The notes beneath the pieces were generated by a model, which had not been told where the DNA came from, searched no databases, and worked only from the letters and a program-made list of their open reading frames with translations. From the IMG/VR virus record IMGVR_UViG_3300017917_002434, positions 186,001 to 250,000 of that record: 64,000 nucleotides of DNA, one strand, 5' to 3'. The translations under genes and the position numbers were made by a program. Positions 7,703 through 54,655 of this stretch are shown one piece after another; position 1 is the first letter of the stretch; each line of letters starts with the position of its first letter.

Positions 7703-7714
7703 AAACATATTAGA

Positions 7715-7720: not shown

Positions 7721-7744
7721 TGGTATCGAAGATCGGAGTAATCG

Positions 7745-10700
7745 ATGGCAGAGTTTAAATTAGGTAGAATTAGGTTTATATGGAAAGGCGAATGGGCCGC
7801 GGGTACCTCTTACCTTAAAGATGACGTAGTCAGAGTAAACGGTAAAGTTTATATCTGCGTTATCGGACATACGGCAGATTCAAATTTTTATGTAGATGCG
7901 AATAATGTTCCCGCACGTTGGAATCAAGCCAGCGATGGCCAATCTTGGAGAGGTGACTGGACTGTTGACACTGAATATTTTGTCAACGATATCGTTAAAT
8001 ATGGCGGACAGTTATACATCTGTTTAGTAGGACACACATCGTCTGCTAACATCAACGACGGATTAGAAGTTGATCTAGATCTTGGCGACAGTACACAGAC
8101 TAAGTGGGATCAATTTGCCGAAGGTTTTGATTGGAAAGGCGACTGGACTACCAGCACCAGATACAAATTAAACGACATAGTCAAATACGGCGGCAATACA
8201 TATCTATGTAATCTAGGACATATCTCTGCTCCTACCGCAGCCATGGGATTAGAAGGTCTAGATAGAGTAACATCAGGACAAAAAGCAGACATTGACAAAT
8301 GGGATCAGTTCTCTGAAGCATTTGACTGGAAAGGTCCATGGACACCATCTACTCGATATAAAATCAATGATGTAGTTTCCTTCGGCGGAACTACTTATGT
8401 ATGTAATGAAGGACATCCTGCTGCTGCGACATTCGCCTTAGGTCTTGAAGCAGATCAGGGTAAGTGGGATTATTTTAATCAAGGTATTGAATATCTCGGT
8501 GCTTGGGACGCAGACGCACAAAATTATAAAGTAAACGATCTAGTTAAAAACGGCAACGGCGTTTATATCTGTTTACAAAAGCATACTTCAAGCCTCTCAA
8601 GAACCTTCGAACAAGATGAAGATTCTGGTTATTGGGCACAATTCTTAGAAGGATTACAATTTGAAGATAGTTGGAACACGTCTACTATCTATCAACCTGG
8701 CGACATAGTTACCTATGGTGGGTATGCTTATGTTGCCACAACTAACCACAGTAACATCAAACCTACACAGGCAGTAACCGGAGCCCAGAACTGGGATCTA
8801 TTCACCACAGCATTTAAATTCCAACAAGACTGGTCAGGAGTCACCGCATATAAAGTCGGCGATGTTGTAAGGCTCAGCGGATATACCTATGTAGCTATCG
8901 CAGATAATACTAATTTCAAACCACCTAATCTAACATATTGGGAACAATTAAATCCTGGTATACGCTGGTTAGGTGCTTGGGCCAATGGTTACGGATATGT
9001 GTTAGGTGACGCTGTACGTTACGGACCTAACAGTTATATCTGCGTTCTAGCACACACATCTGCTACAGCAACAAATAGACCGGATGTAGACATCTCAGGA
9101 ACATTTTGGAATCTATTAGCTAACGGTCAAGAATCGTCCGTGTTAACAACACAAGGCGATATCGTTTACTACGGTGGTGCCGGGCCTACAAGATTACCTA
9201 TAGGTTCAGACGGACAGGTTCTTGTCGTTAACAATGCTGCAGCACCCGAATGGAAATATTGGGGTGAAGTAGATCAACTCTATTATGTGAGCTTAGAAGG
9301 TACAGACGAGCCAGCACCTACATACGGTATTACATTAGACAAACCATGGAGAACCGTAAGATACGCTGCTGACCAGATAGAAAAAGGCACTAGAAATCCA
9401 GAAGCTGCCTATCTGCTAGAAATTAATAGACAATTTGTACAGCGTGAAACAGTTCAGTGGATTAACTATCAGATTACCAACAACATCGCTCCTTTTGTTT
9501 CGAGTTTTTCTTATAATACAACCAAGTGTGAGCGTGATGTTGGATTAATCATTGACGCTTTATTATGGGATATCCGCCACGGCGGTAACGTAAGATCTAG
9601 ACAGGCTGCTGTTGAATACGTAACAAACGCCTCAACATTCTACGGTCTAGGACAAAAAGAAGAAACAGTAGCAGCGATTAATTATGCTGTTGATACATTG
9701 ATCAATACCTGTGTACTACTTAACACAGCACCGGCAACAAATTATCAAGTCACTAACAGCGTTCCAGTCAATGACAGAATCTTACAGATTATCAATACAA
9801 ATTATGTTGCTGAAGATTCATCCTTTACAGAAATTACTAATCTAAAAACACTAATCAACACAGCTATATCGGGCGGTGCGTTAGTGAATGTAGGAGCTGA
9901 AGTAAAACCTCAGAGAACTATATTAGTTAAGACTGGTGTATTCTTTGAAACACTACCAATCATTGTGCCTGTAGATACTGCGGTTGTTGGCGACGAATTA
10001 AGATCTACTAATATCAGACCGGCTACTAGCCAGATCGATCCAACAGATGTTCCTAAAAGTGTTGCTGCTCTAGTATGGTTAGCAAGCGTTCTAGAGGCGG
10101 TTGTTACAGGAGTTACATTTAGTAAAACTACCACAGGGTCAAATCCAAATACACTAACACAGAGTCAAACGAAACCATTCGCTGACAGCTCAGTGGGTAA
10201 TGTTGTGAATTTGGTAGTGCAGAATGCTTACACTTACATTACGGACACTCTGATAATAGGCGGCCCATCAGGTATTACGTTTGTAGGAACAAACACTCCG
10301 GTTAGTGATTATGATACTTACGCAGCAGTAAGACAACTAGAACTTAACAGAGAATTTATCGTAGCAGAAATTCATGCTTATATTGCTGATACATATCCCG
10401 CATACACATATTCTTTAGCGGCTTGTGCTCGAGATATTAATGAATATATAGATGCGGCAAAATATGATTTAATTTATCCTGGCAATTATAGAACGTTAAC
10501 AGCAGCAAAATGGTATGTTAACGGCGTTACTGGTTCAGTAACTGAAAACATGTTCCTAGTTCGAAACAGCACAGGCGTTAGAAATATGACTGTCCAAGGC
10601 CTAACAGGAACACTAACTGGACCAAATTCTTATGGTACATATAGACCAACAGCTGGTGCTTATGTTTCTTTAGATCCAGGCTGGGGCCCTAACGATCAGC

Positions 10701-13700
10701 GTGTTTGGATTACTACAAGATCGTGTTATGTACAGAACGTAACTACATTCGGTACTGCCTGTATTGGTGCTAAGATCGATGGTGATCTACATGCCGGCGG
10801 TAATAAATCTATCGTTGCCAACGACTTTACACAGGTCCTCTCAGACGGAATCGGTGTATGGTGTACTAATCTCGGAAGAACAGAACTTGTTTCTGTATTC
10901 TCATACTACGGACATATTGGTTATCTAGCAGAAGACGGCGGTAAGATACGTGCTACTAACGGTAACAGCTCCTACGGTACATTTGGTTGTGTTGCTGAAG
11001 GCGTTGATGCTACAGAAACACCTATCACAGGCATAGTCAATAACAGATACGAAGAAGCACTGATTACTAAGGTTTTAACTAATACACAACAAGTCCTTCG
11101 TGTTGAATATCAAAATGCTGGTATTGATTATACCGCAGGTACATTTACATTCAACGGTCCAGGTACGTCATTTACCACAGTCGGTGATGAAAGAAGAGAC
11201 GGCGGAATTTTTGAAGTAAGACTGTTAGATAATGATGACAGTTCCGGACAATTTGGAGGACTTGACTATCTAAGTTCAGAAAACGTAGCACAGGCAGGTA
11301 CAACTACATCGATCACCTTAGCCGCTACAGACGACCAAACCAGTACTGCCTATATCGGTATGCGTATCTATATTCAATCAGGTGCTGGCGTAGGACAATA
11401 CGGGTATATTAATACCTATAACGCAGGATCTAAAGTAGCTGGCGTGTTTAAAGAATCAACAGGTACCGCAGGTTGGGACCATGTCGTACCAGGAACTACA
11501 ATAGTATCTCCTGATCCTTCATCATTGTATATAATCGAACCAAGAGTTACAGTAGCAGCACCGACAGAAAGTTCACCTGCTGTTACAGGTGGTCCCGCAG
11601 GCGGATCCTCAGATGCGGTCTATGCTAACGTAAGACAGACATTTACAGGTCTGTCAGCATCGGGCGGATCAGGAACTGGAGCAACATTTAACGTAACTAG
11701 AAGCGGTGAAACTTATACTGTTACATTAAATCAAGCAGGACAAAATTATACGAACGGAAATACCTTAACTATTCTTGGCACAGCGGTAGGCGGTGCTACA
11801 CCAGCCAACGATATCAGGATCAAAGTAGAAACTGTTGATTCTACTCCCGGATTGGTTGTAGGAGAAATATTAACATTTAGACACGAAGGCAAAGGACGCG
11901 GCGGTAATTTCGTACTGCTTCCAGTCGCATCTAGCAACGTCGGTTATTTTTCTACCAACGGTACAAGTTGGTCAACATCTACATTGCCAGCGACTGCTGT
12001 TTGGACATCTTTAGCAACAGGCGATATTAGCAATGTATCATATGTGGTAGCACTGGGTTCTACAGGAACTACAACTGCTGCTTATAGTATTGATGGTGGA
12101 GCAACATGGACCGGATCAAACTTACCCCAGACTAGTGCTGTAACTTCTGTAGCTTTTGGCGGGGGTAGATTTGTTGCCGTAAGATCAGATTCTGCTACGC
12201 CCTTAGTATCTACAAATGGTACTACATGGGCTAACGGTGCTAATCCTCTCCCAGGAGCAACTAATTGGCAGAGTATTACCTACGGAAAAGGTAGATTCTT
12301 TGCTGTGGCCACAGGCGGTACAGCATCTGCTTACAGCCTAGATGGAATTACCTGGACTGCTGCCGCACTACCATCATCGTCAACATGGAACAGCATAGCA
12401 TTTGGAAATAATATATTTGTAGCATTATCTGTAGCAGGTGTGCTGGCTATAAGCAATAACGGGACCAGCTGGACCGCAGTTTCCGGAACCATAACCGCTG
12501 ACGAAGTTGGATACGGACAAGGAACATTTGTTGCTACCAGCAATGGTACCGCAGCAGCACACTGGGATTCACAAGACGGATTGACTTGGACTCAAGGAAC
12601 TGCGACATTTGCTGCCACAGGAAGACCGGTATTTGGTAATCCTAATAGATCTCCATTGTGGGTGATTCCTCTCTCAGCTGCTACTCCTCAAGCACTAGTT
12701 ACAGGTACTAGAGCCTATGTACGTTGTAGAATCGCTGATACTAAGATAGTAGAATTCAGGGTAGTTGAGCCAGGTAGCGGTTACAGTTCTGTAACACCGC
12801 CGACATTGACTATTACAGATCCTAACAATACCTACGAAGCACCGTATACTGTGCGTGTCGGTAACGGTGTATTAGCTAATCCAACATTTGTTACCAGGGG
12901 TGCCGATTGGGAAGTCGCTACAGGAACCGTAGTCGGTGACGGTTACGCAGATATTTTCCAGAATGGCAATTACGTAGACGTCAGAGATCTGTATTCTATA
13001 CCAGTACCAGGTTCAAACGTTGAATTTTCAACATTGCCTGGACAGTTTTACAAACTGGTTACTGTGACACAGTTACTAGGTACAGGGCCTTACACAGCTA
13101 GATTACAGGTAAGTCCTCCGATAGAGATTCCTGAAGCTATGCCGCACGAGGATACTTTTGAAATTAGGATCCGTTATTCACAGGTTCGACTAACTGGTCA
13201 TGATTTCTTAGATATAGGAACAGGCAATTTTACCAGCACTAACTATCCAAATTTACCTTTAATAGATCCGATACCCGCCAACGAAACAGTAGAAAGCAAC
13301 GGCGGTCGTGTGTTCTATACATCAACTGACCAAGATGGCAACTTCCGAGTTGGTGGGTTGTTTACAGTTGAACAAAGTACGGGTACTGCTACACTGAACG
13401 CAGATGCGTTTAATATCGCAGGCCTACAAGAGCTCAGTTTGGGCTCGGTAGAATTGGGCACAGGGGGTGCTACAATCACTGAATTCTCAACGGATCCGTT
13501 CTTTACACAGAATTCAGATTCAGTTATACCTACGCAGAGAGCTATTAAAGCCTACATCAGTTCACAAATTGGTTCAGGCTCTAGTACGTTGAACGTAAAT
13601 ACTCTCACAGCAGGTCAGATATTTGTAGCTAATGACTTCATTACTACTACCACAGGGGGCAGAATCAACGTTCTAGCTCCGATGAATTTCATAGGTGGTA

Positions 13701-13744
13701 TTAATGGAGTGCCGGTGGCTATGAACTTATTTTTACATAGTTAA
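7745..13744 (+). CDS. Giant tail fibre/spike protein (1999 aa), paralogue of 2060..7702 with two inserted CxRD helical domains
   Basis: Same 8 CBM-like repeats; shared blocks 'GGNKSIVANDFTQ', 'YSQVRLTGHDFL.IGTGNFT', 'GGRVFYTSTDQDGNFRVG', 'PTQRAIK'. Confidence 0.75.
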   Translation: MAEFKLGRIRFIWKGEWAAGTSYLKDDVVRVNGKVYICVIGHTADSNFYVDANNVPARWNQASDGQSWRGDWTVDTEYFVNDIVKYGGQLYICLVGHTSSANINDGLEVDLDLGDSTQTKWDQFAEGFDWKGDWTTSTRYKLNDIVKYGGNTYLCNLGHISAPTAAMGLEGLDRVTSGQKADIDKWDQFSEAFDWKGPWTPSTRYKINDVVSFGGTTYVCNEGHPAAATFALGLEADQGKWDYFNQGIEYLGAWDADAQNYKVNDLVKNGNGVYICLQKHTSSLSRTFEQDEDSGYWAQFLEGLQFEDSWNTSTIYQPGDIVTYGGYAYVATTNHSNIKPTQAVTGAQNWDLFTTAFKFQQDWSGVTAYKVGDVVRLSGYTYVAIADNTNFKPPNLTYWEQLNPGIRWLGAWANGYGYVLGDAVRYGPNSYICVLAHTSATATNRPDVDISGTFWNLLANGQESSVLTTQGDIVYYGGAGPTRLPIGSDGQVLVVNNAAAPEWKYWGEVDQLYYVSLEGTDEPAPTYGITLDKPWRTVRYAADQIEKGTRNPEAAYLLEINRQFVQRETVQWINYQITNNIAPFVSSFSYNTTKCERDVGLIIDALLWDIRHGGNVRSRQAAVEYVTNASTFYGLGQKEETVAAINYAVDTLINTCVLLNTAPATNYQVTNSVPVNDRILQIINTNYVAEDSSFTEITNLKTLINTAISGGALVNVGAEVKPQRTILVKTGVFFETLPIIVPVDTAVVGDELRSTNIRPATSQIDPTDVPKSVAALVWLASVLEAVVTGVTFSKTTTGSNPNTLTQSQTKPFADSSVGNVVNLVVQNAYTYITDTLIIGGPSGITFVGTNTPVSDYDTYAAVRQLELNREFIVAEIHAYIADTYPAYTYSLAACARDINEYIDAAKYDLIYPGNYRTLTAAKWYVNGVTGSVTENMFLVRNSTGVRNMTVQGLTGTLTGPNSYGTYRPTAGAYVSLDPGWGPNDQRVWITTRSCYVQNVTTFGTACIGAKIDGDLHAGGNKSIVANDFTQVLSDGIGVWCTNLGRTELVSVFSYYGHIGYLAEDGGKIRATNGNSSYGTFGCVAEGVDATETPITGIVNNRYEEALITKVLTNTQQVLRVEYQNAGIDYTAGTFTFNGPGTSFTTVGDERRDGGIFEVRLLDNDDSSGQFGGLDYLSSENVAQAGTTTSITLAATDDQTSTAYIGMRIYIQSGAGVGQYGYINTYNAGSKVAGVFKESTGTAGWDHVVPGTTIVSPDPSSLYIIEPRVTVAAPTESSPAVTGGPAGGSSDAVYANVRQTFTGLSASGGSGTGATFNVTRSGETYTVTLNQAGQNYTNGNTLTILGTAVGGATPANDIRIKVETVDSTPGLVVGEILTFRHEGKGRGGNFVLLPVASSNVGYFSTNGTSWSTSTLPATAVWTSLATGDISNVSYVVALGSTGTTTAAYSIDGGATWTGSNLPQTSAVTSVAFGGGRFVAVRSDSATPLVSTNGTTWANGANPLPGATNWQSITYGKGRFFAVATGGTASAYSLDGITWTAAALPSSSTWNSIAFGNNIFVALSVAGVLAISNNGTSWTAVSGTITADEVGYGQGTFVATSNGTAAAHWDSQDGLTWTQGTATFAATGRPVFGNPNRSPLWVIPLSAATPQALVTGTRAYVRCRIADTKIVEFRVVEPGSGYSSVTPPTLTITDPNNTYEAPYTVRVGNGVLANPTFVTRGADWEVATGTVVGDGYADIFQNGNYVDVRDLYSIPVPGSNVEFSTLPGQFYKLVTVTQLLGTGPYTARLQVSPPIEIPEAMPHEDTFEIRIRYSQVRLTGHDFLDIGTGNFTSTNYPNLPLIDPIPANETVESNGGRVFYTSTDQDGNFRVGGLFTVEQSTGTATLNADAFNIAGLQELSLGSVELGTGGATITEFSTDPFFTQNSDSVIPTQRAIKAYISSQIGSGSSTLNVNTLTAGQIFVANDFITTTTGGRINVLAPMNFIGGINGVPVAMNLFLHS

Positions 13745-15424: not shown

Positions 15425-15425
15425 G

Positions 15426-16421: not shown

Positions 16422-16432
16422 GAGATAATATA

Positions 16433-18150: not shown

Positions 18151-19092
18151 ATGGAACAACGCTCTAAAGCATTTTTTCTAAACGGCGGAGCAGGCCGTAT
18201 GATTTGTGCTATCCCTGCTTTTGAAAAATACGAACAAGAGTCTGGCGATAAAGACTTTATTATCATCTGCGAAGGCGGAACAGATGTATTCAAAGGACAC
18301 CCGACCCTTGATGCTAGAACCTATGATATCTGGCACAAACACCTTTTTAAAGAAAAGATCAAAGATCGAGATATCGTAAGTCCGGAACCTTATCGCATCT
18401 GGGAATACTATAACCAGAAATGTTCTATAGCACAGGCGTTCGATATCGAAATTAACAGAAAAGGTATTCGGAGCCTTCCCAAACCTACATTAATCTTAAG
18501 CAAGGATGAATTGCTTACTGGTCGCAAACTTATCAACGATGTTAAAAAACAACTAAAAAAGAATAAAATAGTTATCTTCCAACCGTTTGGTAGAGGTATT
18601 CAAGTTATCGATGATACCCCTATAGATTCAACTAGCCGTAGTATTGAATTTAAAGATGTAAAGGCTTTAATCAAAAAATTACAAGAAAAAGATTTTGGTG
18701 TAGTTTTAATGAGTGAGTTTAAGATAGATTTTACTGATGAAAAATTCAAAGATGAAATCGCTATGCCAGAAAATGTAACTATGCGTCAGTGGGCCGCAAT
18801 TATCAAATATGCTGATCATTTTTTAGGCTGCGACAGTTTAGGGCAACATCTAGCATATTGTGTAGATAAACCTGCTACAGTGTTGTTCGGATCAACATAT
18901 CCTATTAATGTGTCGTATCCAGATTGTAAATCATTTACTATCCTAGACATGGGTGAAGATTTACGTGAATATAGTCCTATCAGAATTACCATGGATGAAC
19001 GCATTGATAGAAAACACGAACCTATAATGACAATGACTCCAGAAATACAAAATTACGTTGTAGAAGCCGTACAAGGGAAACATAAAAAATGA
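18151..19092 (+). CDS. Glycosyltransferase family 9 (ADP-heptose heptosyltransferase-like)
   Basis: N-terminal 'GGAGRMICAIPA' and C-terminal GT9 signature 'WAAIIKYADHFLGCDSLGQHLAYCVDKPATVLFGST.P' (cf. DSG..HLA.A...P...LFG.T). Confidence 0.7.
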   Translation: MEQRSKAFFLNGGAGRMICAIPAFEKYEQESGDKDFIIICEGGTDVFKGHPTLDARTYDIWHKHLFKEKIKDRDIVSPEPYRIWEYYNQKCSIAQAFDIEINRKGIRSLPKPTLILSKDELLTGRKLINDVKKQLKKNKIVIFQPFGRGIQVIDDTPIDSTSRSIEFKDVKALIKKLQEKDFGVVLMSEFKIDFTDEKFKDEIAMPENVTMRQWAAIIKYADHFLGCDSLGQHLAYCVDKPATVLFGSTYPINVSYPDCKSFTILDMGEDLREYSPIRITMDERIDRKHEPIMTMTPEIQNYVVEAVQGKHKK

Positions 19093-20897: not shown

Positions 20898-20898
20898 T

Positions 20899-20923
20899 AA
20901 AACCCCCGTTTTAGGGGGTTTTT
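20899..20923 (+). terminator. Rho-independent terminator (possibly bidirectional)
   Basis: aaaaccccc-gtttta-gggggttttt immediately after the carbamoyltransferase stop. Confidence 0.8.
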
Positions 20924-20942
20924 AGTTTCTCCAAAAATCAGT

Positions 20943-20948
20943 TAAATA
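20943..20948 (+). promoter_or_regulatory. Late promoter core (TAAATA)
   Basis: gtTAAATA directly after the terminator and before ATG 20970. Confidence 0.6.
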
Positions 20949-20969
20949 TAAGATACAACGAGCGTAACT

Positions 20970-22544
20970 ATGACTGATTTTACCAAGTACTTTGGCAGTG
21001 GTGTAAAAAATACTCTGTTTCTTAAAAACGGAGTAAACTTCTTTAATAGAGGGCCATGGCGTCAAATCTTTGCCGACACAGAAATTGATCGCTGGTATGT
21101 GGGTGATTTTGCCGCAGCACAGTATATTATTTCTGTGGAATTCGATTCACAGAAAAAAGAAACAATGTCAATACTGGTGGTTGCTAGACCTGACCAAGCC
21201 AGCTATACGATATACGGGCGTGCCTCTATAGATGATCCATTGATTACTGTTTCGGCTACAGTCAATGACAGTTATCTCAGTCTAAAATTATCTCCAATAA
21301 TCGACGATTACGAAGGCGTTCGTGCGATCTATTTTGCTCAATACTTCGCTACATTGACTGATCTAGAAAGACCCACACCTTTAACTTATCTAGTAGATGA
21401 AGGAAATATAGGTGGCGGTGGTGGTGGCGGTGGACAAATACCCGACGGCGGAGGATCTGGAGGAAGCAATGCTAATCTCTCCGCTATAGATAGAACTTTA
21501 ACTCCTACTTCAGACGGAACATTTGATGTAGGTATTGCTTTAAAAAGATTCAGAGATCTCTATCTTAAAAATACAATAAATCTAGACGGTGCTGTAATTT
21601 CTAAAAACATAGGCGGTAGCATTGAGTTACCAGAAGGAACTACTGTTGGCGGAAATGAGTTAAAATCTTTTGGCACTATTTCTGTAGCAGGCGAAAACGA
21701 CGTTGACAGTATATCGTTAAATGATAATCTAACTTTGATAGCCGGCTCTGGCATGACTATCACTACAAATTCGTCAAATAGAAGTATCACACTTTCTAGT
21801 TCAGGTGGTGGCGGTGGAGGTGGGGGCGTATCGGCTAACGCTTTCGGAGTGATAAGTGTAGCAGGTCAATCAACTATCAGAGCCGACTCCGCCTCGGATA
21901 CTCTAACTTTTGTAGCAGGTTCAGGAATATCTATAACAACCAACGCAACCAGCGATAGAATTACTATTACCAACACAGGCGGATCTAGTGGTGGCGGTGG
22001 TGGTGGCGGAACTGCTACAGATATTATAGTATCTGAAGTTCTCGATGGCGTATATCCGATGGTGATCGCCGAAGGAACAGATCCTATATCCGGACAAAGT
22101 TTATACGCTAGCTCTGGAGTGACTTTAGAAGTCACGACCAGTACATTAAATGTTACAGCAACAACAGCTAAATGGGCTGACTTAGCAGAAAAATATTTGG
22201 CTGATCGTGCCTACGAACCAGGGACTGTACTAGAGTTCGGCGGAGACAAAGAAGTCACACTAGCAGAAGATTCTACACGTAGAGTAGCAGGAGTAGTTTC
22301 GACCAATCCAGCATTCGTAATGAATGAAAACCTCCAAGGTGAAACAGTAGTAAAATTAGCATTACAGGGTCGTGTTCCTTGTAAAGTCAGAGGAAAAATA
22401 CGCAAGGGAGACATGTTAGTAAGTGGAGGGGGTGGTTATGCCAGACCATGTAATGACCCAATGCTAGGTACGGTAATAGGAAAAGCTCTAGAAGATTTTG
22501 ACGAAGTGTCGGGAATCATAGAGGTTGTAGTTGGCAGATTATAA
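20970..22544 (+). CDS. Fibre/spike protein with poly-Gly linkers and C-terminal intramolecular-chaperone (peptidase G2-like) domain
   Basis: Three poly-Gly tracts; C-terminal 'ADLAEKY..D..YEPGTVL.FGG.KEVT...VAGVVSTNPA.VMN...LALQGRVPCKV.G.I.KGD.LV'. Confidence 0.65.
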   Translation: MTDFTKYFGSGVKNTLFLKNGVNFFNRGPWRQIFADTEIDRWYVGDFAAAQYIISVEFDSQKKETMSILVVARPDQASYTIYGRASIDDPLITVSATVNDSYLSLKLSPIIDDYEGVRAIYFAQYFATLTDLERPTPLTYLVDEGNIGGGGGGGGQIPDGGGSGGSNANLSAIDRTLTPTSDGTFDVGIALKRFRDLYLKNTINLDGAVISKNIGGSIELPEGTTVGGNELKSFGTISVAGENDVDSISLNDNLTLIAGSGMTITTNSSNRSITLSSSGGGGGGGGVSANAFGVISVAGQSTIRADSASDTLTFVAGSGISITTNATSDRITITNTGGSSGGGGGGGTATDIIVSEVLDGVYPMVIAEGTDPISGQSLYASSGVTLEVTTSTLNVTATTAKWADLAEKYLADRAYEPGTVLEFGGDKEVTLAEDSTRRVAGVVSTNPAFVMNENLQGETVVKLALQGRVPCKVRGKIRKGDMLVSGGGGYARPCNDPMLGTVIGKALEDFDEVSGIIEVVVGRL

Positions 22545-22550
22545 CACCAA

Positions 22551-22556
22551 TAAATA
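22551..22556 (+). promoter_or_regulatory. Late promoter core (TAAATA)
   Basis: aaTAAATA 9 nt before ATG 22566. Confidence 0.6.
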
Positions 22557-22565
22557 CTAGGTAAA

Positions 22566-23141
22566 ATGACAGTACAGACAAAACAATTTAGAACTGAATT
22601 TGGTTACAGAAGTCCGGGATTCCTCGTAGATCAGGAAGGCGATCTAACGGCATTATCTATAACTACCTCAAATGTCAATGCTACTACGATAAGCATAAGT
22701 GGTTCGGCAGTGATCGATACTAATCGATTAACAGAAACTATAAGAAATAGTAGTTTAGAAACACTAGGAACATTACAAAATTTAACAGTAAACGGTGACG
22801 TATTACTGAAAAAGAATAATATAAATCGGCTGACCCTGATAAATGGCAGATTAGTAATTAACAGTCTAGCCACAGGAGCAATAGATAATGTTGATATAGG
22901 TCAAACTACACCTGGTAAAGTAGATACCTATCAATTAAATGTGGTAGAAAATAACGGCGTAAATGGTGAATTAGTTGCCGATGGTGCTAACATATCGTTT
23001 GATGCTGCTACTATAACCGGTACTGTTACTTATATAGAAAATATTTCTATCAATGCGGTTCCTACATCAGGTCAACATGCCGCTCGTAAAGATTATGTAG
23101 ATAATTCAGTCATCGCTTTCGCGGTGGCATTTGGAGCCTAA
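22566..23141 (+). CDS. Short fibre-like structural protein (191 aa)
   Basis: 'SSLETLGTLQNLTVNG', 'G.IDNV.IG.TTP', 'PT..QHAARKDYVD' fibre motifs and hydrophobic C-terminal 'IAFAVAFGA'. Confidence 0.6.
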   Translation: MTVQTKQFRTEFGYRSPGFLVDQEGDLTALSITTSNVNATTISISGSAVIDTNRLTETIRNSSLETLGTLQNLTVNGDVLLKKNNINRLTLINGRLVINSLATGAIDNVDIGQTTPGKVDTYQLNVVENNGVNGELVADGANISFDAATITGTVTYIENISINAVPTSGQHAARKDYVDNSVIAFAVAFGA

Positions 23142-23150
23142 GGATAAAAG

Positions 23151-26100
23151 ATGGCAAAGAGAAAAATAGACAATTATACATTTAGACCGGGTATCAGTTA
23201 CCTGGGAAATCTGTATCCAGATGAATGGCAGAGCTTTTCTGATAACGTGCCGTTTATCAAAGCAGAACTAACAGCCTATTTAAACTATAGGATAGACATC
23301 GACACTGAGGTAAATCTGTATCCAAATGCTGTCCGTATTTTAGAAAACAATATTAATTTTATCAAAGAAGAAGCGACTGCTTGGATAGCTACACAGGTAG
23401 CAGGTAACTTTCCTGGATTTGTAGGTTATACTTACGATTCAGCCAAATGTAAAAGAGACATTGGATTTGTTTTAACCGCTTATATCCATGATGTTAGATA
23501 CGGAGGTAATGAAGACACTAGAACCATAGTCGGAAAATACTGGATCAACAATGAGCCACAGGTCGATGGGGATCGTCAGGCTGAGGTTAAAACTCACGAG
23601 TTTATCAGAGATCTTATAACAGATTACATTTTGCCTCTAGCTTCGTACACACCATTACAGCTTATCGCAACTAGATACACAACAGGACCAGCAGCCGAGG
23701 CCAACGCAGCAGCCCGTATAGATACCCTTTCAGCAATCACGACCACAGTAATCGCTAATGGCTTATCGTCGATGCCAGCGATATCTTATAAATCTGCTCC
23801 ATACGAAAATTATACATTTAATTCTGAAAAATGTCAGAGAGATCTTGGCTACGTACTAGATGCTTACTTACATGACTTGCGTTATGGCGGAAACGAACAG
23901 ACTCGACTCACGATACAAAAATACTACGACAACGGAGTACTACAAGTCGACGGCAGCGGCCAAGCTGAAGTTGAAGGTCATGAATTTGTAAGAGATCTTA
24001 TTATTAATAATATCATGCAGAATGAAGCCGGTACGATATTGTATCCTGAAGCTGTGAGATTATTAACGCTGAACAAGGCCTATTTACAAAATGAAATCTT
24101 AGGATGGATCGCTAATGAAGTCACTGAAGCTACTAAATGCGAAAGAGATATTGGATATCTTATCGATGGAGCACAATATGACATAGTACTAGGCACAAAT
24201 TACAATGCTTTATTTTTAGGCTTAGCAGAATTCAACTCTTTAGATAATGATTTTTTCGTTATCGACACTATACAAAGAACTAAAACAGCCATAGCAGCTC
24301 TACCTAATGTTGCTGCGAGTACCGCAGCAGTGGCTAGAAATAATGCTTTCTTCAATGAAGTAGTTGACATAATCCAGAATGGTAGAGGAAGTGCTAATGA
24401 ATTAGTGTTAGCCGAACCAAGTAATGCTACAGTCAGTAGGATCGCAGCTAAAAATCAACTTGTAGCCAATAAAAATTTCTTAGCCGCAGAAGTTAATGCG
24501 TGGGTAGCAGAGCAATATCCTACAGCTGATCATGATCCTGTAAAATGTTCTAGAGACGTTAAGTATGCTATCGATGCCTTATGCTACGATATCTTATATG
24601 GCGGAAACTCGGCTACTTACGATCAGGCTAGATTTTTCTTTTACGGTTTCTCTAGCGGAGCTCCAGGCATTGATCCTACTCATAGATTACAAACTGTAGC
24701 TGCCTATGTACATCTAAAACAAGTTATCGGTCAAGTGGTACAGAATCAAACGGTTACTAAGACCACAGGCAATACCTTAACACAGAATCAAACATTTCCA
24801 GCAGCCAGTTCGTCGGATGCTATTATCTGTCAAAATCTAGTACAGATCACAGCAGATGTTGTAGCAGCGACAACACAAACACAGGCAAATACGATTTTAT
24901 CCGGTATTGTAAGATCAGTTCCTAGCATCACATTCGCGACTTCTGCTTTACAGACAGCTTTTAATGCGATAACAACAGCTAAAACATCTGTGATAAATTC
25001 TGTTGTTGTTTTCAAAGGATATACCTATGATTCTGCCAAGTGTATCAGAGATTCTGGCTTTGTCATAGATGCCCTAATCTATGACTTAGAAAATAACGGT
25101 AACGAAGAATCAAGACGAATAGCCCAGAAATACTATATAGATGGAGTTTTTCAAGTTGACGGATCCCGTATTCCTGAAATAGCCAGCTATAGATTTTTAC
25201 AAGAAACGATCAAGAATTATATTTTTCCAAGAGTAAATGCTCCTGATTATCAGATTGTATATCCTCAGATATTAACAGCACCATCTGCTGAAGTAGGTGC
25301 CTACGCAAGAATTACTGAACTAACAGATGTGTTTATTAATTTTCTAAAAGATGGTCCTAGTAGTTTACCAGCACTGTCTCAGAGAACTGTTCCTTATCAA
25401 ACAGTAGAACAGCAGGTAGTTGACACTACCAAAGCCTACGATCCTGATGCTGGCACAGCTATTTTAGCACTTTCAAATGCTCTAGTTAACATCATAGAAC
25501 AAGGTCTCGGAGCATTGCCTGTTAAAGAAAGTGCTGGATATGGTTTGATCAAATTTCAGGGTGTTGTAAGATTAGAAGACCTTTTACTAATCACAAATAC
25601 TACAAAAAATGTAGTTATCTATAATTTCTCTAGCAATACTGCTGGCGGCGAAATTGTGCCAGAGTTTGACGGCGATGACGATTTCATAGCGTTCAAACAG
25701 GTTACAGATCGAGTTATTCATCTACGATTAAATGTTGATACATCGACTATGGATGAAACTGACGAGCTACAGATATTTGCTGAAGCCCCGGAAATGAAAG
25801 TTCGTCCGTACGATTTTGGTACAGATGCTATCGAACGTCATAGAGTTGCTTCGCCTCAGTCAATGCTTGACGCTGACTTCGAATATGGTCTACAACCAAC
25901 TAAGTGGCAGGCTATTGGTATCGCCAGAGGTTATCCATCAGTGTATGAAGTACCAGGATCAGATTTTGAAGTTGTGTCTATAACAACCGATGCGTCATTT
26001 CCTAACAACGGTGTAGGTGCTTCGACTATAACTGTAACCACAGCAGCACCGCACGGATTATCAGCTGGTACACCGGTTACAGTGGCTGGTCTTGACACAG

Positions 26101-29100
26101 CGATCTCTGGTATCAGTAGAGCAGAGGGAGCGTTTGTCTTAGTAACTATCCCGACTCCTACTACATTTACATATTTTGCCAAGTCTAGAGTAGGTACTAC
26201 CTCAGGAACCAGTTTAAAAACTACCTATACTCAGATTAGAAAAGGCGGATTTTACACAGGGGCATCCATAGGTTTACCGACTATCAACTTGTTATCTAAC
26301 GGGACATCGGGAACTTTTGTAACACAATTTGATACTCCGGCTGCGACATCTCGAATAGCTATCGCCAGCGGTAATATTCCAAGCGTAGGATCACCTATGA
26401 ATGCCGCAGTAGGTATCGGGTTTGGTTCTCAGGTCACTGCCGTAGTCGGTGCTGGGGGTGTCGTAGTGACTCCCACTGTGTTAGGGGACTATGCTCCAAC
26501 ACTATTAGGTCTTACTACTCTTACCGTAGCTAGTACCAGCGGTATAGTGATTGGTTTAGGTGCCAATGATCAGACTGGATCGTCGACGTTCGTTGAATCT
26601 ATAGTAGGAACTAATGTAACATTTACTAGACCTTTTTCCGGTGCTGTGATAGGAAATACCACTACCTATACAGAATTAACCGGAACCAACGAAATATCTA
26701 TCGGTTCAGCAGCAACATTCAATGTCGTTGGTAGCTCGGCAGGTTACATTTCTGTAGCCGTTAATTCAGGAGGCAGCGATTATCAAGTAGGAGATGTATT
26801 AAGAATAGTAGGAACTGATCTTACAGGAACAACGCCAGCTAACGATCTATTGATCAAAGTAGCTACAGTATCCGGTGGTGCTATTTTAACTGCCGACGTT
26901 ATTTCTGGAACTAGTGTAATGTCGTCACCTAACGAAACTATTAGCGGCATTAATAATAGTTCTTATACTGCTACTAGTCCAGACAGTACCATAGGTTCTG
27001 GAGCTACTTTTGACGTAACTAGAAACGGCACAGCTTTTACATCAGTAATCAATGCCGGTGGTACTGGATACGTCAAGGGAACAGAGTTTCTAATCTTAGG
27101 AACTGTATTTACAAATAACACTACTCCGGCTAACGATGTAGAAATCACAGTTACCCAGACCACAGCAACATTTACTGGTCTATTACAAGATGCGACTACA
27201 CTATCTGGTAGCTCGGCACAATTTAGTATAACTAGGATCGGTGCTACCTATACCAGTTTGGTAGTTTCATTCGCTGGTAGCGGTTATGCCCTAGGAGAGA
27301 TCGTTACGATCTACGGAACCCAACTAGGGGGCAACAATCCTTCAAACGATCTTCAGATCCAGGTTGACAACGTAGGCGGGGGCGGTGAAATTATCGCAGC
27401 GTCGCTGGTCAGCGGACTTGTAGCTAATGAAGATGCTCCTGGTGTAATTTCTCAGATATCTACCGCAGGTACAGGTGATAATAGAACAACTATTAATAAT
27501 GTCCCAGTTCTAATAGTTCCAGGATCAGGAATTAACTGTGAATTTTCTATAACTAGAACCGCCAGCGGTTATACAAACGTAGTAGTAACAGATGGAGGCA
27601 CTGCCTACCTACCAGGAAATAGAATTAGGATCCTAGGCAGCGACCTTGGGGGAGCAAACACAACTAATGATGCTATTGTTTCAGTGACTTCTGTTGACTC
27701 TATCACCGGAGCAATTACCGCAGCTACAGTAACTGGAACTGGTGTAGCAGGTATCAATTTACAGTTATATTCATCTGTGACTCTCAGCGAATTTACTACA
27801 GCTACTATAGCTTCGAGTACCAGCCTAGGCTTTGGTACCCTAGCGACTTTACAGATAATTTTTCAAGAGCCGCATGGTATACCACCCGGGGGATCATTTA
27901 TCGTTACTGTGAGTTCAGACAACGGATCTAACAATCATGCGTTAGCCAATGGATCTTTCTCTGCTACTCAGATACCTACAAGAAACACTATTACTTTCCA
28001 GGCTAGATCTCCGGGCGTTATCACAGGAGCACCTATTACCGGAGTCGTATACCCAAGACCGGACAGTTTCTTCACACATAGACCGTTTGACGGCGGTGTA
28101 CAACTAGGTACTGGCGGTCCACAACACGGTGTACAGGCTATACGACAGAGTAAAAAATATATTCGTTATCAATCTGGTAAAGGTGTAATGTATACAACGG
28201 GTGCTCTGTTTGCTCCAAGTTATGATGTATTGTCTATATTGGCAACAGATGTCGAAGTTGGAGCTACCATAGAAATCACCTTAGGTGATAATGATCACGG
28301 GTTACAGCGTGGTGCTGTGATTAGACTCAGCGGAGTCTTAACTGGAGGTTACGATGGCGATTATGAAGTAGATGAAATCGTCAGCGAACGTACATTTAGA
28401 ATAATCGCTACGAAGCGTGTAGGTTCTAGAAAACCGTCATTGAGCTTCAGCTGTCAAATTTCTACACTACGTTGGAAGGGTGCGGTAGTACGTGCCGGAG
28501 TGTTTGATGATCAAAATGGAATATTCTGGGAATATGACGGACAGACATTATGGGCCGTTCAGCGTACTTCTACTAAACAATTAGCAGGTACGATCTCAGT
28601 TAACGCTGGCTCAAACAGGATCACAGGACTGAACAGTAGATTTAGAGATCAATTAAAAGCCGGTGACGCTGTTACTATCAGAGGTATGACACACATCGTA
28701 ACTCACGTCGACAGCCAAACTTCGATGACTGTTAACCCAGATTATCGCGGCGTCAGCAATGTGTCAAACGCTAAGATGAGTTTAATTTCAGAAGTACGTG
28801 TACAACAACGAGATTTCAACAAAGATAGATTAGACGGAACAGGTCCTAGCGGATACGATCTAGATATTACCAAGATGCAGATGATCGGAATCCAATATTC
28901 ATGGTACGGTGCTGGTTTTATTGACTTCATGTTGCGAGGATCTGATGGAAATTATGTGTTCGCCCATAGAATGAGAAATTCGAATATCAATACCGAAGCT
29001 TATATGAGAACAGGTAACTTGCCTGTGAGATATGAAGTTTCAAACTACGGTGCGACCAGCAGATTAGTTGGAGACATTGGAAACACATCTACAGAGTTAA

Positions 29101-31232
29101 CTCTCGAAAGCATAGCAGGATTCCCTACTACGGGAATCGTTTATATCGATAACGAAATGATTTCGTACACTGGAGTTAATACCAGCCAGAACAAACTCAC
29201 AGGGTGTACTAGATCAGCACAGTTAGATCTATTCATTGCTGGTGCTAATAGAAATTTTACCGCAGGGGTAGCTGCTAATCACAGCAACGGTACAGGTGTA
29301 ATTTTAATGAATAACACTACAACACCTTTGATTAGCCACTGGGGTAGTGCGTTCTTGACCGACGGATTGTTTGATTTTGACCGTGGATACATTTTCAACT
29401 ATGCTTCTACCGGTCTAAGTGTAAGCACTGTTAAATCAACGGCTTTCCTAATTCGTCTAGCACCTAGTGTGTCAAACGCAGTTGTTGGAGATCTAGGCGA
29501 TAGAGAGCTCCTAAATAGAGCACAATTACTATTGAAAGAAATCGCAGTAACGTCAGACACAGGCTCGGGCGGTATTATTGTTGAGGGAGTATTAAATCCT
29601 CAGAATTATCCTTCTAATCCTAGCGACATTGTTTGGTCAGGTTTGTCCGGTGTTGCGGCCGGTGGTCAGCCTAGCTTCGCTCAGATAGCACCAGGAGGAT
29701 CTGTAAACTGGTCAGGCGGCGTAGCCCAACCAACAGCTACAGCCACAGCATTAAACACAGTTACCGCCAATATCACTGTACCAAATAAAACAGCATTCAA
29801 TAGACCTGCTGGTACATCATTCGTCTATGTTACACAGACTAGCTGGAATACATCAGGATCCCAGAGTGGTTTCGCTATAGCAGCTTCAGATACTAAATTC
29901 CAGTCTGGTACAACAATTTCATCCGTAGCTTCGAGTCCTAGTCCAGTAGCCACGACATTAGGAATATTAACTTCTAGTATGTCTACATTCTTTAGAAGTA
30001 TATCGGGTAATAGTATCAGCGGTAACGGTATTACTGCCACATTGAACTTTAACAACCAAGGATACGTACCGTTTCCAGTAAATTCGAGAATAACTGTTAG
30101 TGGTTTCAGTGCTTATAATGGAACTTATATCGTAACTGGAGCAGGAAATAACTTTGTACAGTTTGCCTCTACGTCGACTAACTTCCAAACAAACGGAACA
30201 GTCCAGACTGCTTACGTCGCTGGGCAGACAACATTGAACATAACAGAAGCTAGTTGGAATAACATGACTAGCCCTGTAACACAGACAGGATTTGGCGTAA
30301 CATCTTCATTTCCGGCAGGAACAACTGTCACTGGAGTTACATCGATACAAGGAACATCGCCGAACAGATACTATACCGTGACATTCAGTCAGGGTCTTAC
30401 TTCTGATTTACCGTTATCATCTACGACTATCAATACCAGTTTTGGTGGAGCAAGAACAAGCACAAATAACCTATTCTTTACCGCAGCTAGTTGGACAGCA
30501 TTACCAGTAGATGTTCCGGTTAACGGCACACTGACTAATGATCCTACCAAATTTACTGGCGGAACTATTATCAACTCTATCAGCGGCCTACAGACATTTG
30601 GCGGTACTGGATACTATTCTGTATCATTTAGTAACAACTGTATAGGAACATTAGCAGGCGGAACAACTGTCACATTTGATACTATACCTTATTTTACTCT
30701 GTTCTTGAGTAGAACTTCGGCACAGGCTGTTAATGCTAATGCCACTATAACTATGTCATTGGCACAAAACTCTGCTGTCACCAACTTTGTGTATTTTACA
30801 CAGGCCAGTTGGGAAACTCTAGTTTCGACCTATTCAGCAGGTGCCGGTACAGAAGTAGCAGATACAAAATTTGCTGCGGGTACTCGTGTTGCTACTGTGA
30901 GTACTCTAAGAACGTTTGGTGGTTCTGGATATTATGTAGTAACATTTACCCAGACGTCTAATGCTGTTGTGGCTGGCGGAAACACTATTACATTTAGATT
31001 TGGACAACCTCCATATGCGTTACCGGGCGAACAGGTATTCTCATTCATCAGTTTACCAGGAAGTTCGGACAGTCTTAACCTAGAGGACCTCAAAGAATTA
31101 ACCAATACTACCTTGGGTGGTAGAGGTACATTCCCTAACGGTCCTGACGTTTTGGCTATCAACATCTTCAAAGTATCTGGAGCAGCAGTTAACGCTAACG
31201 TAATTCTACGTTGGTCCGAAGCACAAGCCTAA
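23151..31232 (+). CDS. Giant virion structural protein (2693 aa) with five N-terminal CxRD helical repeats and Thr/Gly/Ser-rich beta repeats
   Basis: AAGGA SD; 'LLLITNTTKN..IYNF', 'DADFEYGLQPTKW', 'RYQSGKG', 'IQYSWYGAGFIDF' blocks typical of large T4-like virion proteins; repeated 'GG..Y..G..(I/L).I.G..LGG....ND'. Confidence 0.7.
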   Translation: MAKRKIDNYTFRPGISYLGNLYPDEWQSFSDNVPFIKAELTAYLNYRIDIDTEVNLYPNAVRILENNINFIKEEATAWIATQVAGNFPGFVGYTYDSAKCKRDIGFVLTAYIHDVRYGGNEDTRTIVGKYWINNEPQVDGDRQAEVKTHEFIRDLITDYILPLASYTPLQLIATRYTTGPAAEANAAARIDTLSAITTTVIANGLSSMPAISYKSAPYENYTFNSEKCQRDLGYVLDAYLHDLRYGGNEQTRLTIQKYYDNGVLQVDGSGQAEVEGHEFVRDLIINNIMQNEAGTILYPEAVRLLTLNKAYLQNEILGWIANEVTEATKCERDIGYLIDGAQYDIVLGTNYNALFLGLAEFNSLDNDFFVIDTIQRTKTAIAALPNVAASTAAVARNNAFFNEVVDIIQNGRGSANELVLAEPSNATVSRIAAKNQLVANKNFLAAEVNAWVAEQYPTADHDPVKCSRDVKYAIDALCYDILYGGNSATYDQARFFFYGFSSGAPGIDPTHRLQTVAAYVHLKQVIGQVVQNQTVTKTTGNTLTQNQTFPAASSSDAIICQNLVQITADVVAATTQTQANTILSGIVRSVPSITFATSALQTAFNAITTAKTSVINSVVVFKGYTYDSAKCIRDSGFVIDALIYDLENNGNEESRRIAQKYYIDGVFQVDGSRIPEIASYRFLQETIKNYIFPRVNAPDYQIVYPQILTAPSAEVGAYARITELTDVFINFLKDGPSSLPALSQRTVPYQTVEQQVVDTTKAYDPDAGTAILALSNALVNIIEQGLGALPVKESAGYGLIKFQGVVRLEDLLLITNTTKNVVIYNFSSNTAGGEIVPEFDGDDDFIAFKQVTDRVIHLRLNVDTSTMDETDELQIFAEAPEMKVRPYDFGTDAIERHRVASPQSMLDADFEYGLQPTKWQAIGIARGYPSVYEVPGSDFEVVSITTDASFPNNGVGASTITVTTAAPHGLSAGTPVTVAGLDTAISGISRAEGAFVLVTIPTPTTFTYFAKSRVGTTSGTSLKTTYTQIRKGGFYTGASIGLPTINLLSNGTSGTFVTQFDTPAATSRIAIASGNIPSVGSPMNAAVGIGFGSQVTAVVGAGGVVVTPTVLGDYAPTLLGLTTLTVASTSGIVIGLGANDQTGSSTFVESIVGTNVTFTRPFSGAVIGNTTTYTELTGTNEISIGSAATFNVVGSSAGYISVAVNSGGSDYQVGDVLRIVGTDLTGTTPANDLLIKVATVSGGAILTADVISGTSVMSSPNETISGINNSSYTATSPDSTIGSGATFDVTRNGTAFTSVINAGGTGYVKGTEFLILGTVFTNNTTPANDVEITVTQTTATFTGLLQDATTLSGSSAQFSITRIGATYTSLVVSFAGSGYALGEIVTIYGTQLGGNNPSNDLQIQVDNVGGGGEIIAASLVSGLVANEDAPGVISQISTAGTGDNRTTINNVPVLIVPGSGINCEFSITRTASGYTNVVVTDGGTAYLPGNRIRILGSDLGGANTTNDAIVSVTSVDSITGAITAATVTGTGVAGINLQLYSSVTLSEFTTATIASSTSLGFGTLATLQIIFQEPHGIPPGGSFIVTVSSDNGSNNHALANGSFSATQIPTRNTITFQARSPGVITGAPITGVVYPRPDSFFTHRPFDGGVQLGTGGPQHGVQAIRQSKKYIRYQSGKGVMYTTGALFAPSYDVLSILATDVEVGATIEITLGDNDHGLQRGAVIRLSGVLTGGYDGDYEVDEIVSERTFRIIATKRVGSRKPSLSFSCQISTLRWKGAVVRAGVFDDQNGIFWEYDGQTLWAVQRTSTKQLAGTISVNAGSNRITGLNSRFRDQLKAGDAVTIRGMTHIVTHVDSQTSMTVNPDYRGVSNVSNAKMSLISEVRVQQRDFNKDRLDGTGPSGYDLDITKMQMIGIQYSWYGAGFIDFMLRGSDGNYVFAHRMRNSNINTEAYMRTGNLPVRYEVSNYGATSRLVGDIGNTSTELTLESIAGFPTTGIVYIDNEMISYTGVNTSQNKLTGCTRSAQLDLFIAGANRNFTAGVAANHSNGTGVILMNNTTTPLISHWGSAFLTDGLFDFDRGYIFNYASTGLSVSTVKSTAFLIRLAPSVSNAVVGDLGDRELLNRAQLLLKEIAVTSDTGSGGIIVEGVLNPQNYPSNPSDIVWSGLSGVAAGGQPSFAQIAPGGSVNWSGGVAQPTATATALNTVTANITVPNKTAFNRPAGTSFVYVTQTSWNTSGSQSGFAIAASDTKFQSGTTISSVASSPSPVATTLGILTSSMSTFFRSISGNSISGNGITATLNFNNQGYVPFPVNSRITVSGFSAYNGTYIVTGAGNNFVQFASTSTNFQTNGTVQTAYVAGQTTLNITEASWNNMTSPVTQTGFGVTSSFPAGTTVTGVTSIQGTSPNRYYTVTFSQGLTSDLPLSSTTINTSFGGARTSTNNLFFTAASWTALPVDVPVNGTLTNDPTKFTGGTIINSISGLQTFGGTGYYSVSFSNNCIGTLAGGTTVTFDTIPYFTLFLSRTSAQAVNANATITMSLAQNSAVTNFVYFTQASWETLVSTYSAGAGTEVADTKFAAGTRVATVSTLRTFGGSGYYVVTFTQTSNAVVAGGNTITFRFGQPPYALPGEQVFSFISLPGSSDSLNLEDLKELTNTTLGGRGTFPNGPDVLAINIFKVSGAAVNANVILRWSEAQA

Positions 31233-31236
31233 AAGG

Positions 31237-31264
31237 TTGACAATCAGACTTTTTGCTGTATAAT
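31237..31264 (+). promoter_or_regulatory. sigma70 consensus (early) promoter of the heptose operon
   Basis: TTGACA (31237-31242), 16 nt, TATAAT (31259-31264); predicted +1 at about 31271, the ATG. Confidence 0.8.
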
Positions 31265-31270
31265 TACAGC

Positions 31271-54634: not shown

Positions 54635-54655
54635 CTTAAATCCGTTTTAAAACGT

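Follow-up and report, generated by a model that had tools for sequence, protein, structure and literature searches.

Which kind of domain forms the repeats in the N-terminal part of a giant, virion-type protein encoded on a 64,000-nucleotide stretch of viral DNA (positions 186,001 to 250,000 of IMG/VR record IMGVR_UViG_3300017917_002434; this entire stretch is termed the window here), and could these repeats carry a pigment? A reading of the window made from the letters alone, in the following the sequence-only reading, had pointed to five repeats with the motif KCxRDIG...GG in a protein of 2693 amino acids (aa) and had likened this motif to the bilin-attachment site at Cys84 of phycocyanin alpha. 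The analyses presented here lead us to conclude with high confidence that the repeat domain is a true homologue of the phycobiliproteins. The overall best explanation, according to which the repeats are phycobiliprotein-derived beads that are loaded with bilin on the virion, has in our view about an even chance of being correct.

The 2693-aa protein contains five C-x-R-D sites and no more (at aa 100, 228, 330, 466 and 631), and five of its eleven Cys residues belong to them. On the basis of its composition, 0.019 such sites are expected by chance, and three or more occurred in none of 20,000 shuffles. The positions of the Cys codons given in the sequence-only reading (Table 1) are borne out by the residue positions, the five 22-residue segments quoted there are all present letter for letter, and the pattern 'L..N..F(I/L)..E...(W/Y)' described upstream of the sites is real, the respective columns of the family hidden Markov model (HMM) being occupied by L in 66%, N in 79%, F in 55%, I in 59%, E in 67% and an aromatic residue in 94% of the cases. 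Repeat boundaries were derived from an iterated HMM seeded with the five copies from the window, resulting in a unit of about 110 residues and in five matches with E-values between 1e-19 and 1e-34 (Table 1). Repeat 4 is the top-scoring copy and contains an additional Cys at aa 478, while repeat 3 is the most diverged. As the cores of the five copies exhibit identities of 26-62% on the protein and 44-62% on the DNA level, they go back to old duplications and not to a recent expansion.

The case for homology with phycobiliproteins is built on five partly independent tests, i.e., Pfam, a profile search of the PDB, hhalign, AlphaFold in combination with Foldseek and an HMM for phycocyanin alpha (CpcA), which agree on one family and one register over about 100 residues. 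Many homologous proteins carry precomputed matches to PF00502 (Phycobilisome protein), and the gathering cutoff for this family, 22.2 bits, is passed by repeats of the homologues designated P0027 (36.7 bits), P0034 (25.9 bits) and P0053 (24.9 bits), the matches of which jointly cover profile positions 29-141 of 155. When 102 diverse repeats were inspected singly, nine matched PF00502 at E<=0.01, without recurrent matches to any other family. A repeat profile, made from an alignment of 102 diverse copies, was compared with 177,635 distinct PDB sequences and yielded 20 matches at E<=10, of which 19 were phycocyanin alpha chains (best E 0.008). Their alignment spans CpcA residues 39-103, and the repeat Cys falls on Cys84. 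A profile was needed here, since a plain phmmer search of the PDB with aa 1-850 missed the phycobiliproteins and returned a single weak match to TetR. For hhalign, nine CpcA and eleven CpcB sequences translated from genuine cyanobacterial cpcBA loci served as reference. Aligned with these 20 sequences, the repeats reached a probability of 93.5% (P 2.3e-7, 97 columns), with repeat columns 11-112 corresponding to phycobiliprotein columns 36-145 of 173 and the C, R and D of the motif coming to lie on Cys84, Arg86 and Asp87.

The AlphaFold2 model calculated for the region of repeat 1 (aa 50-180) with the 102-repeat alignment as input consists of five helices (predicted local distance difference test score, pLDDT, 87.3; predicted template modeling score, pTM, 0.77). 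Upon comparison of this model with 350,542 PDB chains by Foldseek, the best 50 neighbors were phycobiliproteins without exception, including phycocyanin, phycoerythrin, allophycocyanin and cryptophyte types, with probabilities of up to 0.99 and query-normalized template modeling scores of up to 0.62; neither an ordinary globin nor any other fold was present among these 50. The fold check proposed in the sequence-only reading therefore did not bring up an unrelated fold, as far as a predicted structure can tell. An HMM derived exclusively from 112 CpcA sequences gave 20.5 bits on the window protein, compared to a maximum of 12.1 bits in 500 shuffles of its N-terminal region, and, with the regions around the Cys in register, matched four of the five repeats. 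Its best single match is repeat 3 (aa 321-362, aligned to CpcA 75-119), and in the region of repeat 2, aa 169-238 are aligned to CpcA 24-94. The corresponding HMM for CpcB scores 2.3 bits. In the reverse direction, alpha-type subunits obtained 19-21 bits and beta-type subunits 9-13 bits with the repeat HMM. Judged from these sequence comparisons, phycocyanin alpha is the closest phycobiliprotein. The likeness first seen in the short KCxRDIG stretch thus extends over about 100 aligned residues, and the helical phycobiliprotein/globin-like domain in several copies postulated in the sequence-only reading is what all five tests point to.

With CpcA and the phycobiliproteins in general (PF00502), the phage domain has in common a globin-type helical core (A/B, E, F, G), a helix-B motif of the form A..L..N...[IL] and the helix-E motif K-C-x-R-D-I-G-[YF]-x-L...G-G with equal spacing. 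Besides a short hairpin, the model contains helices corresponding to A/B, E, F and G, which in phycobiliproteins line the Cys84 bilin pocket. Unlike the phycobiliproteins, the phage domain comprises about 110 instead of about 162 aa and features an invariant Asp(+14) and Tyr(+30) (positions relative to the Cys). It occurs in tandem arrays within virion proteins of 1,000-6,400 aa, whereas phycobiliproteins are free subunits that build the phycobilisome discs. In the hhalign comparison, the repeat alignment starts after the X/Y hairpin and stops before helix H. In alpha-beta monomers, Arg93 forms a salt bridge to Asp13 of the other subunit; when membership was assessed by the X/Y hairpin and this Asp13-Arg93 pairing, both were found to be absent from the repeats. 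Given the loss of the hairpin, helix H and Arg93, the repeat is not a phycobilisome subunit but a stripped core domain.

Mean column identity within the repeat family amounts to about 25%, and some columns are nearly fixed. This applies to the Cys (94-95%), Arg(+2) (94-95%) and Asp(+3) (98%) as well as to Asp(+14) (98%), Tyr(+30) (92-94%), Tyr(-5) (88%) and Asn(+20) (83%). The combination C-R-D-D is intact in 92.7% of 3,180 copies from 276 proteins. Asp(+3) is absent in one of 3,000 copies with Cys vs. 74 of 180 copies without Cys, and Arg is missing in 47 of 3,000 vs. 129 of 180 copies, the copies in these counts being phylogenetically non-independent. Residues replacing the triad are mostly bulky aromatics (Tyr or Phe for Cys, Tyr for Asp), as if a cavity were being filled. 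In three repeats of the S-SM1 protein SSM1_102, Cys and Asp(+3) are kept and the Arg position varies (C-E-D-D, C-K-T-D, C-Q-R-D), so that in some lineages the triad is under the weakest constraint at Arg.

A search with aa 40-760 of the window protein led to 969 related proteins of about 2,000-4,300 aa, and in the first 120 of these the repeat HMM recognized 1,666 copies, 4 to 24 per protein. Among 1.84 billion representative proteins searched with the 102-copy profile by HMMER, 1,670 matched at E<=1e-3 and 687 at E<=1e-30. Copy number in the family ranges from 2 to 37, the maximum being located in one protein of 6,382 aa. When we looked for free-standing single domains, six small matches appeared that are probably gene fragments, because each of them resides on a contig of 0.8-2 kb. 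With tblastn, the repeat array matched 249 of 50,697 cultured phage records, all of them cyanophages (by name, 189 'Synechococcus', 51 'Cyanophage', 8 'Prochlorococcus' and 1 'Marine'), and phages of heterotrophs with the repeat domain were not found among these 50,697 records. The predicted viral structures in BFVD exhibit the same distribution, and no entry is annotated there as phycobiliprotein-like.

The carriers include p091 of S-PM2, a 'tail fiber protein' with five copies that is located upstream of gp13 just like the window protein, the giant gp7-like 'baseplate wedge' proteins of MED4-213 (CPMG_00035), P-HM1 and P-HM2 with at least two copies, and SSM1_102 (T4-GC969) of S-SM1, a protein of 6,180 aa encoded directly upstream of gp9 with at least three copies. 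These giant proteins of cyanomyoviruses resemble that from the window with regard to the C-x-R-D repeat and the location in tail/baseplate gene modules. They differ in their source, which is Kyanoviridae/Eurybiavirus phages of about 175-200 kb on the one hand and a jumbo lineage resembling PA5oct and Atu_ph07 on the other. Outside of the repeats, the bodies of the carrier proteins are mutually non-homologous except for a module of about 60 aa, which identifies the repeat as a shuffled module. The window protein conforms to this pattern, as BLASTP of its body against S-PM2 p091 and the gp7-like protein of MED4-213 revealed no homology apart from the module of about 60 aa. Small displayed domains that are arrayed in tandem, shuffled and variable in copy number are likewise known from the immunoglobulin (Ig)-like arrays of T4 Hoc. 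Those are, however, beta-sandwich adhesion modules without a cofactor site, whereas the phage repeat is all-alpha and has an attachment triad.

In the window, the giant gene lies in a tail/structural module with genes for tail fibers, a gp15-like sheath stabilizer, gp13, sheath and tube nearby. While a Pfam scan of the whole 2693-aa protein did not reveal any family, it matches phrog_5838 ('virion structural protein') with aa 794-2013 and phrog_4527 with aa 50-261. SSM1_102 belongs to T4-GC969, which has been detected in purified S-SM1 particles by mass spectrometry, and S-PM2 p091 (T4-GC830) is listed as hypothetical only (Sullivan et al., 2010). The proteins had been treated with iodoacetamide for alkylation in that work, and peptides carrying a bilin were probably not included in the search. 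The designation as a virion protein in the sequence-only reading is therefore in line with PHROG annotation and synteny, which are its basis for the window protein itself, and the presence in virions has been seen for the homologue SSM1_102.

The mechanism that we consider most likely starts from a five-helix domain of about 110 aa that has descended from the phycobiliprotein (bilin-binding globin) fold and that picocyanobacterial phages have put, as a mobile module, into various giant tail-fiber, gp7-like baseplate and other virion proteins. Every copy would take up a bilin made by the host or the phage during assembly in the infected cyanobacterium. The conserved Cys would provide the thioether to ring A of the bilin, Asp(+3) would hydrogen-bond the inner pyrrole nitrogens and Arg(+2) would hold a propionate, as their counterparts do in phycobiliproteins. 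Attachment could proceed autocatalytically as in the BBAG globins or via a lyase. This would turn the virion appendage into biliprotein beads on a string, and light-responsive adsorption or photoprotection might be its role further downstream. That the repeat binds bilin covalently is predicted with a probability which we place just short of even. We infer this functional, tetrapyrrole-related part indirectly, from the extreme conservation of the triad, from the loss of its residues together and from the restriction to cyanophages. Structural reasons can hardly account for the retention of one unpaired Cys in each extracellular domain.

CXRD is a recognized signature of bilin-binding globins, and BBAG-1 and BBAG-3, which possess the motif, attach bilins without a lyase (PMC10151467). 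In phycocyanin, Asp87 forms hydrogen bonds to rings B and C of phycocyanobilin (PMC11587079). BBAG-1 and BBAG-3 resemble the phage domain in that they are distant, non-light-harvesting relatives of the phycobiliproteins that have kept CXRD (Rockwell, Martin and Lagarias 2023, PMC10151467). Likened by description and motif, their lyase-free attachment constitutes a precedent for loading of the phage domain. On the other hand, BBAGs are single-domain cellular proteins encoded beside genes for heme oxygenase and (ferredoxin-dependent) bilin reductase, whereas the phage repeats are arrayed and have no such genes nearby in the window.

A number of observations weigh against phycobiliprotein-derived, bilin-loaded beads. 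Several of them concern the relationship with phycobiliproteins. E-values of single matches are weak, ranging from 0.008 to 1 for PDB sequences and Foldseek (0.2-1 for Foldseek). AlphaFold has been trained on phycobiliproteins and may favor folds already seen. The repeats of the window itself have no match to PF00502 or any other Pfam family, irrespective of whether the whole protein or single repeats are used. In a protein-language-model atlas, the best named score for repeat 4 was 0.53 (phage lysozyme/SLT), which is far below the lead level and uninformative. Neither helix H nor the X/Y hairpin is present in the repeat domain, Asp takes the place of Arg93 in 81% of the repeats, and beyond the triad few phycobiliprotein invariants are kept. 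The triad itself is lost as a unit, but this co-loss is partly a general decay of degenerate copies, since Tyr(+30), taken as a control, is co-lost as well (odds ratio 35 vs. about 2,100 for Asp(+3)).

Other such observations concern the loading with bilin. Among those open reading frames (ORFs) of the 64-kb window that were scanned with Pfam or PHROGs, there was no ho1, pcyA, pebS or lyase gene; the scanned ORFs comprise sugar-nucleotide, glycosyltransferase and methyltransferase enzymes and T4-type structural/replication genes only. P-SSM2 possesses heme oxygenase and bilin reductase, yet no repeat is found in its whole 252 kb, which weakens the notion that phage bilin genes exist solely for loading the repeats. 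Similarly, S-CREM2 encodes an S-type lyase, and there is no repeat in 48 kb that include giant fiber and baseplate genes; given this repeat-free 48 kb, the S-CREM2 virion proteome provides no support. A report of pigmented cyanophage particles was not found in the literature. Finally, free virions that expose bilin might incur a cost, since the pigment could act as a photosensitizer.

The phage lyase PhiCpeT from P-HM1 reportedly binds phycoerythrobilin tightly and does not transfer it to the beta-subunit of the host. Lyase genes are common in cyanomyoviruses, and the function of phage bilin genes has been called 'a mystery' (Sullivan 2010). Directly upstream of the repeat gene in the window, an ORF for 191 aa (22566-23141) is present wherever the giant gene is (70 homologues). 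Considered as a possible S/T-type bilin lyase, it belongs to no Pfam or PHROG family, and its matches in the atlas are unnamed viral clusters only. An AlphaFold model based on 31 homologues is poor (pLDDT 63, pTM 0.28) and beta-rich. The C-terminal 'HATRKDYVDN' of the protein resembles motifs of tail fibers.

Among the alternatives, the one that survives best holds that the phycobiliprotein-derived domain has been exapted as a pigment-free helical spacer or ruler in long fibers and baseplate proteins, with Cys, Arg and Asp being kept for folding or for contacts between domains or chains, such as salt bridges, a transient disulfide or a metal site. We consider this a serious though doubtful possibility. 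Shuffling among unrelated bodies at copy numbers between 2 and 37 is as expected for a length-setting bead, but a purely structural role does not require restriction to phages of bilin-producing hosts. The oligomerization features of light-harvesting subunits have been lost, and the new invariants Asp(+14) and Tyr(+30) suggest a re-tooled core; yet Asp(+3) is almost never lost as long as the Cys is present, and the replacements resemble the filling of a cavity. A disulfide encounters the difficulty that a homotrimer cannot pair a single Cys symmetrically and that copy numbers are odd as well as even. The Cys of phycobiliproteins has no known role besides the thioether, and extracellular structural modules do not usually have a lone unpaired Cys in every domain. 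A pigment-free bead is, in turn, well compatible with a window devoid of bilin genes and with P-SSM2, where such genes occur without repeats.

Distinctly less probable, and in our opinion rather improbable, is a ligand-sensing or adhesive module without covalent pigment, which would bind, for example, free tetrapyrrole or bilin from lysing cells as a host cue or a glycan of the cell envelope, the arrays acting as low-affinity adhesins as do Ig-like domains on other phages. Tandem arrays on tail-fiber and baseplate proteins and the retention of the pocket-lining helices agree with such a function, as do the sugar-modifying genes flanking the giant gene, and the fold is able to hold bilins in other ways, BBAG-2 globins binding biliverdin without CXRD (PMC10151467). 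A non-covalent binder, however, has no evident need for a Cys conserved to 94-95%, and the data do not identify a ligand. Chance or convergence, i.e., an unrelated helical bundle that merely shares the short K-C-x-R-D-I-G with phycocyanin alpha, is extremely improbable, because modest E-values of every single method against genuine phycobiliproteins, window repeats below the Pfam thresholds and an atlas without phycobiliprotein signal are set against five tests that indicate the same family and register over about 100 instead of 7 residues, 50 best structural neighbors without any other fold family and a score that exceeds the shuffle maximum by 8 bits.

Some cyanophages need light to adsorb, independent of host photosynthesis (2019, PMC6628666). 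Of the sequenced phages considered in that work, those with light-dependent adsorption (S-PM2, P-HM1 and P-HM2) have repeats in a tail-fiber or baseplate protein (three of three), while the dark adsorbers P-SSM2 and P-SSP7 have no repeats genome-wide (best domain E 0.37). As there are only about two independent lineages per side, this pattern of five out of five is a lead and not evidence. It is predicted, as an unlikely but consequential possibility, that chromophorylated repeats are the long-sought photoreceptor for light-dependent adsorption; upon illumination, the bilin beads would change their conformation or interaction and thereby license attachment. Should this be true, a light sensor belonging to the phage itself would be known for the first time, and at least some phage bilin lyases and reductases would have found their acceptor protein.

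The repeat is not confined to the giant gene. A second repeat-bearing gene of the window (7745..13744, 1999 aa) lies outside the coordinates covered by the sequence-only reading. Its product matches tail-fiber PHROGs and phrog_4527, and both copies exhibit C-x-R-D. Positions of all units are compiled in Table 1.

Table 1. Repeat units and regions of their carrier proteins in the window.
Feature	Position	Strand	Basis
Giant virion-type protein gene, 2693 aa: repeat array aa ~50-710, followed by beta-rich body aa ~794-2693	23151..31232	+	ORF
Repeat 1, aa 56-176, Cys100 (codon 23448), KCKRD...GGN	23316..23678	+	HMM E 2.4e-28
Repeat 2, aa 207-298, Cys228 (codon 23832), KCQRD...GGN	23769..24044	+	HMM E 3.2e-22
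Repeat 3, aa 297-409, Cys330 (codon 24138), KCERD...GTN	24039..24377	+	HMM E 7.4e-20
Repeat 4, aa 429-546, Cys466 (codon 24546), KCSRD...GGN	24435..24788	+	HMM E 1.2e-34
Repeat 5, aa 592-707, Cys631 (codon 25041), KCIRD...NGN	24924..25271	+	HMM E 8.5e-23
C-terminal body, aa 794-2693, beta-rich, Gly/Thr/Ser-rich, own short internal repeats	25530..31229	+	PHROG match
Further repeat with C-x-R-D in 1999-aa tail-fiber-like protein	9401..9754	+	HMM E 2e-27
Second, partial repeat with C-x-R-D in 1999-aa tail-fiber-like protein, HMM positions 4-78	10322..10546	+	HMM E 2.5e-21

The C-terminal body of the giant protein (aa 794-2693) has no relative among PDB sequences. It features two further sets of repeats. 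Between aa ~1170 and ~1500 (window ~26650-27650), four copies of an unrelated unit of about 65-95 aa occur ('GSGATF.V...GG.GY..G....I.G..LGG..P.ND'). A unit matching this repeat is present at the C-terminus of S-PM2 p091 (BLASTP E 3e-6), and by its sequence it appears to be a further module that is shuffled among giant proteins of cyanophages. Near the C-terminus, at aa ~2484-2600 (window ~30590-30950), there are two copies of a unit ending with 'TFGG(T/S)GYY.V(S/T)F', a pair that suggests a duplicated distal domain, possibly involved in receptor binding.

T4-type neighbors in the window comprise tail-fiber proteins (2060-13744), a sheath protein of 1119 aa, a head-closure protein, the large terminase, a gp32-like single-stranded DNA-binding protein and UvsX. 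Identity as a classical cyanomyovirus was considered and rejected, since sheath and terminase are nearest to those of the jumbo phages PA5oct, Phosso, Atu_ph07 and GAP32, the identity of the large terminase to these phages being 53%. Near-identical DNA is absent from the 50,697 phage records. Near-identical or syntenic copies of the giant gene are located on contigs of 269,730 and 367,522 bp, and the sequence is present in metagenomes from ponds, aquaculture, lagoons, rivers and lakes from 2018-2025. The carbamoyltransferase encoded in the neighborhood shares 62% identity with its counterparts in the Synechococcus phages S-SSM7 and Sf-FS3. As nearly all matches of this enzyme stem from cyanophages and the occurrence is in freshwater, the host is probably a freshwater picocyanobacterium. 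Tail modules, too, are common to the window phage and Synechococcus phages. The window phage is a T4-superfamily jumbo phage of about 270-370 kb and may represent a lineage of jumbo cyanophages without a cultured member.

In P-SSM2 (236-240 kb), a Nol-like carbamoyltransferase gene directly precedes that for a heptose kinase/adenylyltransferase, followed by a sugar kinase gene. In the window (19089-31666), the carbamoyltransferase and heptose kinase/adenylyltransferase genes are split by three genes, those for a 524-aa tail-fiber-like protein, the 191-aa protein and the giant repeat protein, which looks like an insertion into a sugar-modification cassette. Three tandem paralogues (322, 331 and 378 aa) at 14456-17401, all assigned to phrog_4205, for which no function is given there, sit between the tail-fiber genes and the carbamoyltransferase gene and are kept in the syntenic 367 kb contig. 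Furthermore, two large clusters for sugar-nucleotide/envelope-sugar enzymes are located at 31253-34115 and 53999-63342. They encode heptose kinase/adenylyltransferase, a PfkB kinase, cupins, epimerases/dehydratases, proteins resembling UDP-glucose/GDP-mannose dehydrogenase and mannose-1-phosphate guanylyltransferase, GT8 and GT25 glycosyltransferases and several methyltransferases. For a phage, this repertoire for glycan modification is unusually rich.

Phycobiliproteins are viewed as the antenna proteins that serve photosynthesis in cyanobacteria and algae, with the BBAGs as recently recognized cellular relatives. In the open-access full-text literature, we found no paper that describes virion proteins of phages as containing a phycobiliprotein-like domain, an absence that is not proof, and a 2026 article dealing with phage pebS makes no mention of one either. 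The repeat described here is a new member of a known superfamily, truncated and arrayed, and the setting in which it occurs is without precedent. For annotation, a domain of about 110 aa can now be defined in some 1,670 representative proteins that are currently labeled 'hypothetical' or 'tail fiber'. If the sites are not loaded, a photosynthetic fold of the host has been captured and rebuilt as a building block of the virion, and the role of Cys, Arg and Asp needs explaining. If they are loaded, phage particles are biliproteins; the sites would then be candidate targets for some of the bilin genes and lyases encoded by phages as well as candidates, accessible to mutation, for the cause of the light requirement that S-PM2, P-HM1 and P-HM2 show in adsorption.

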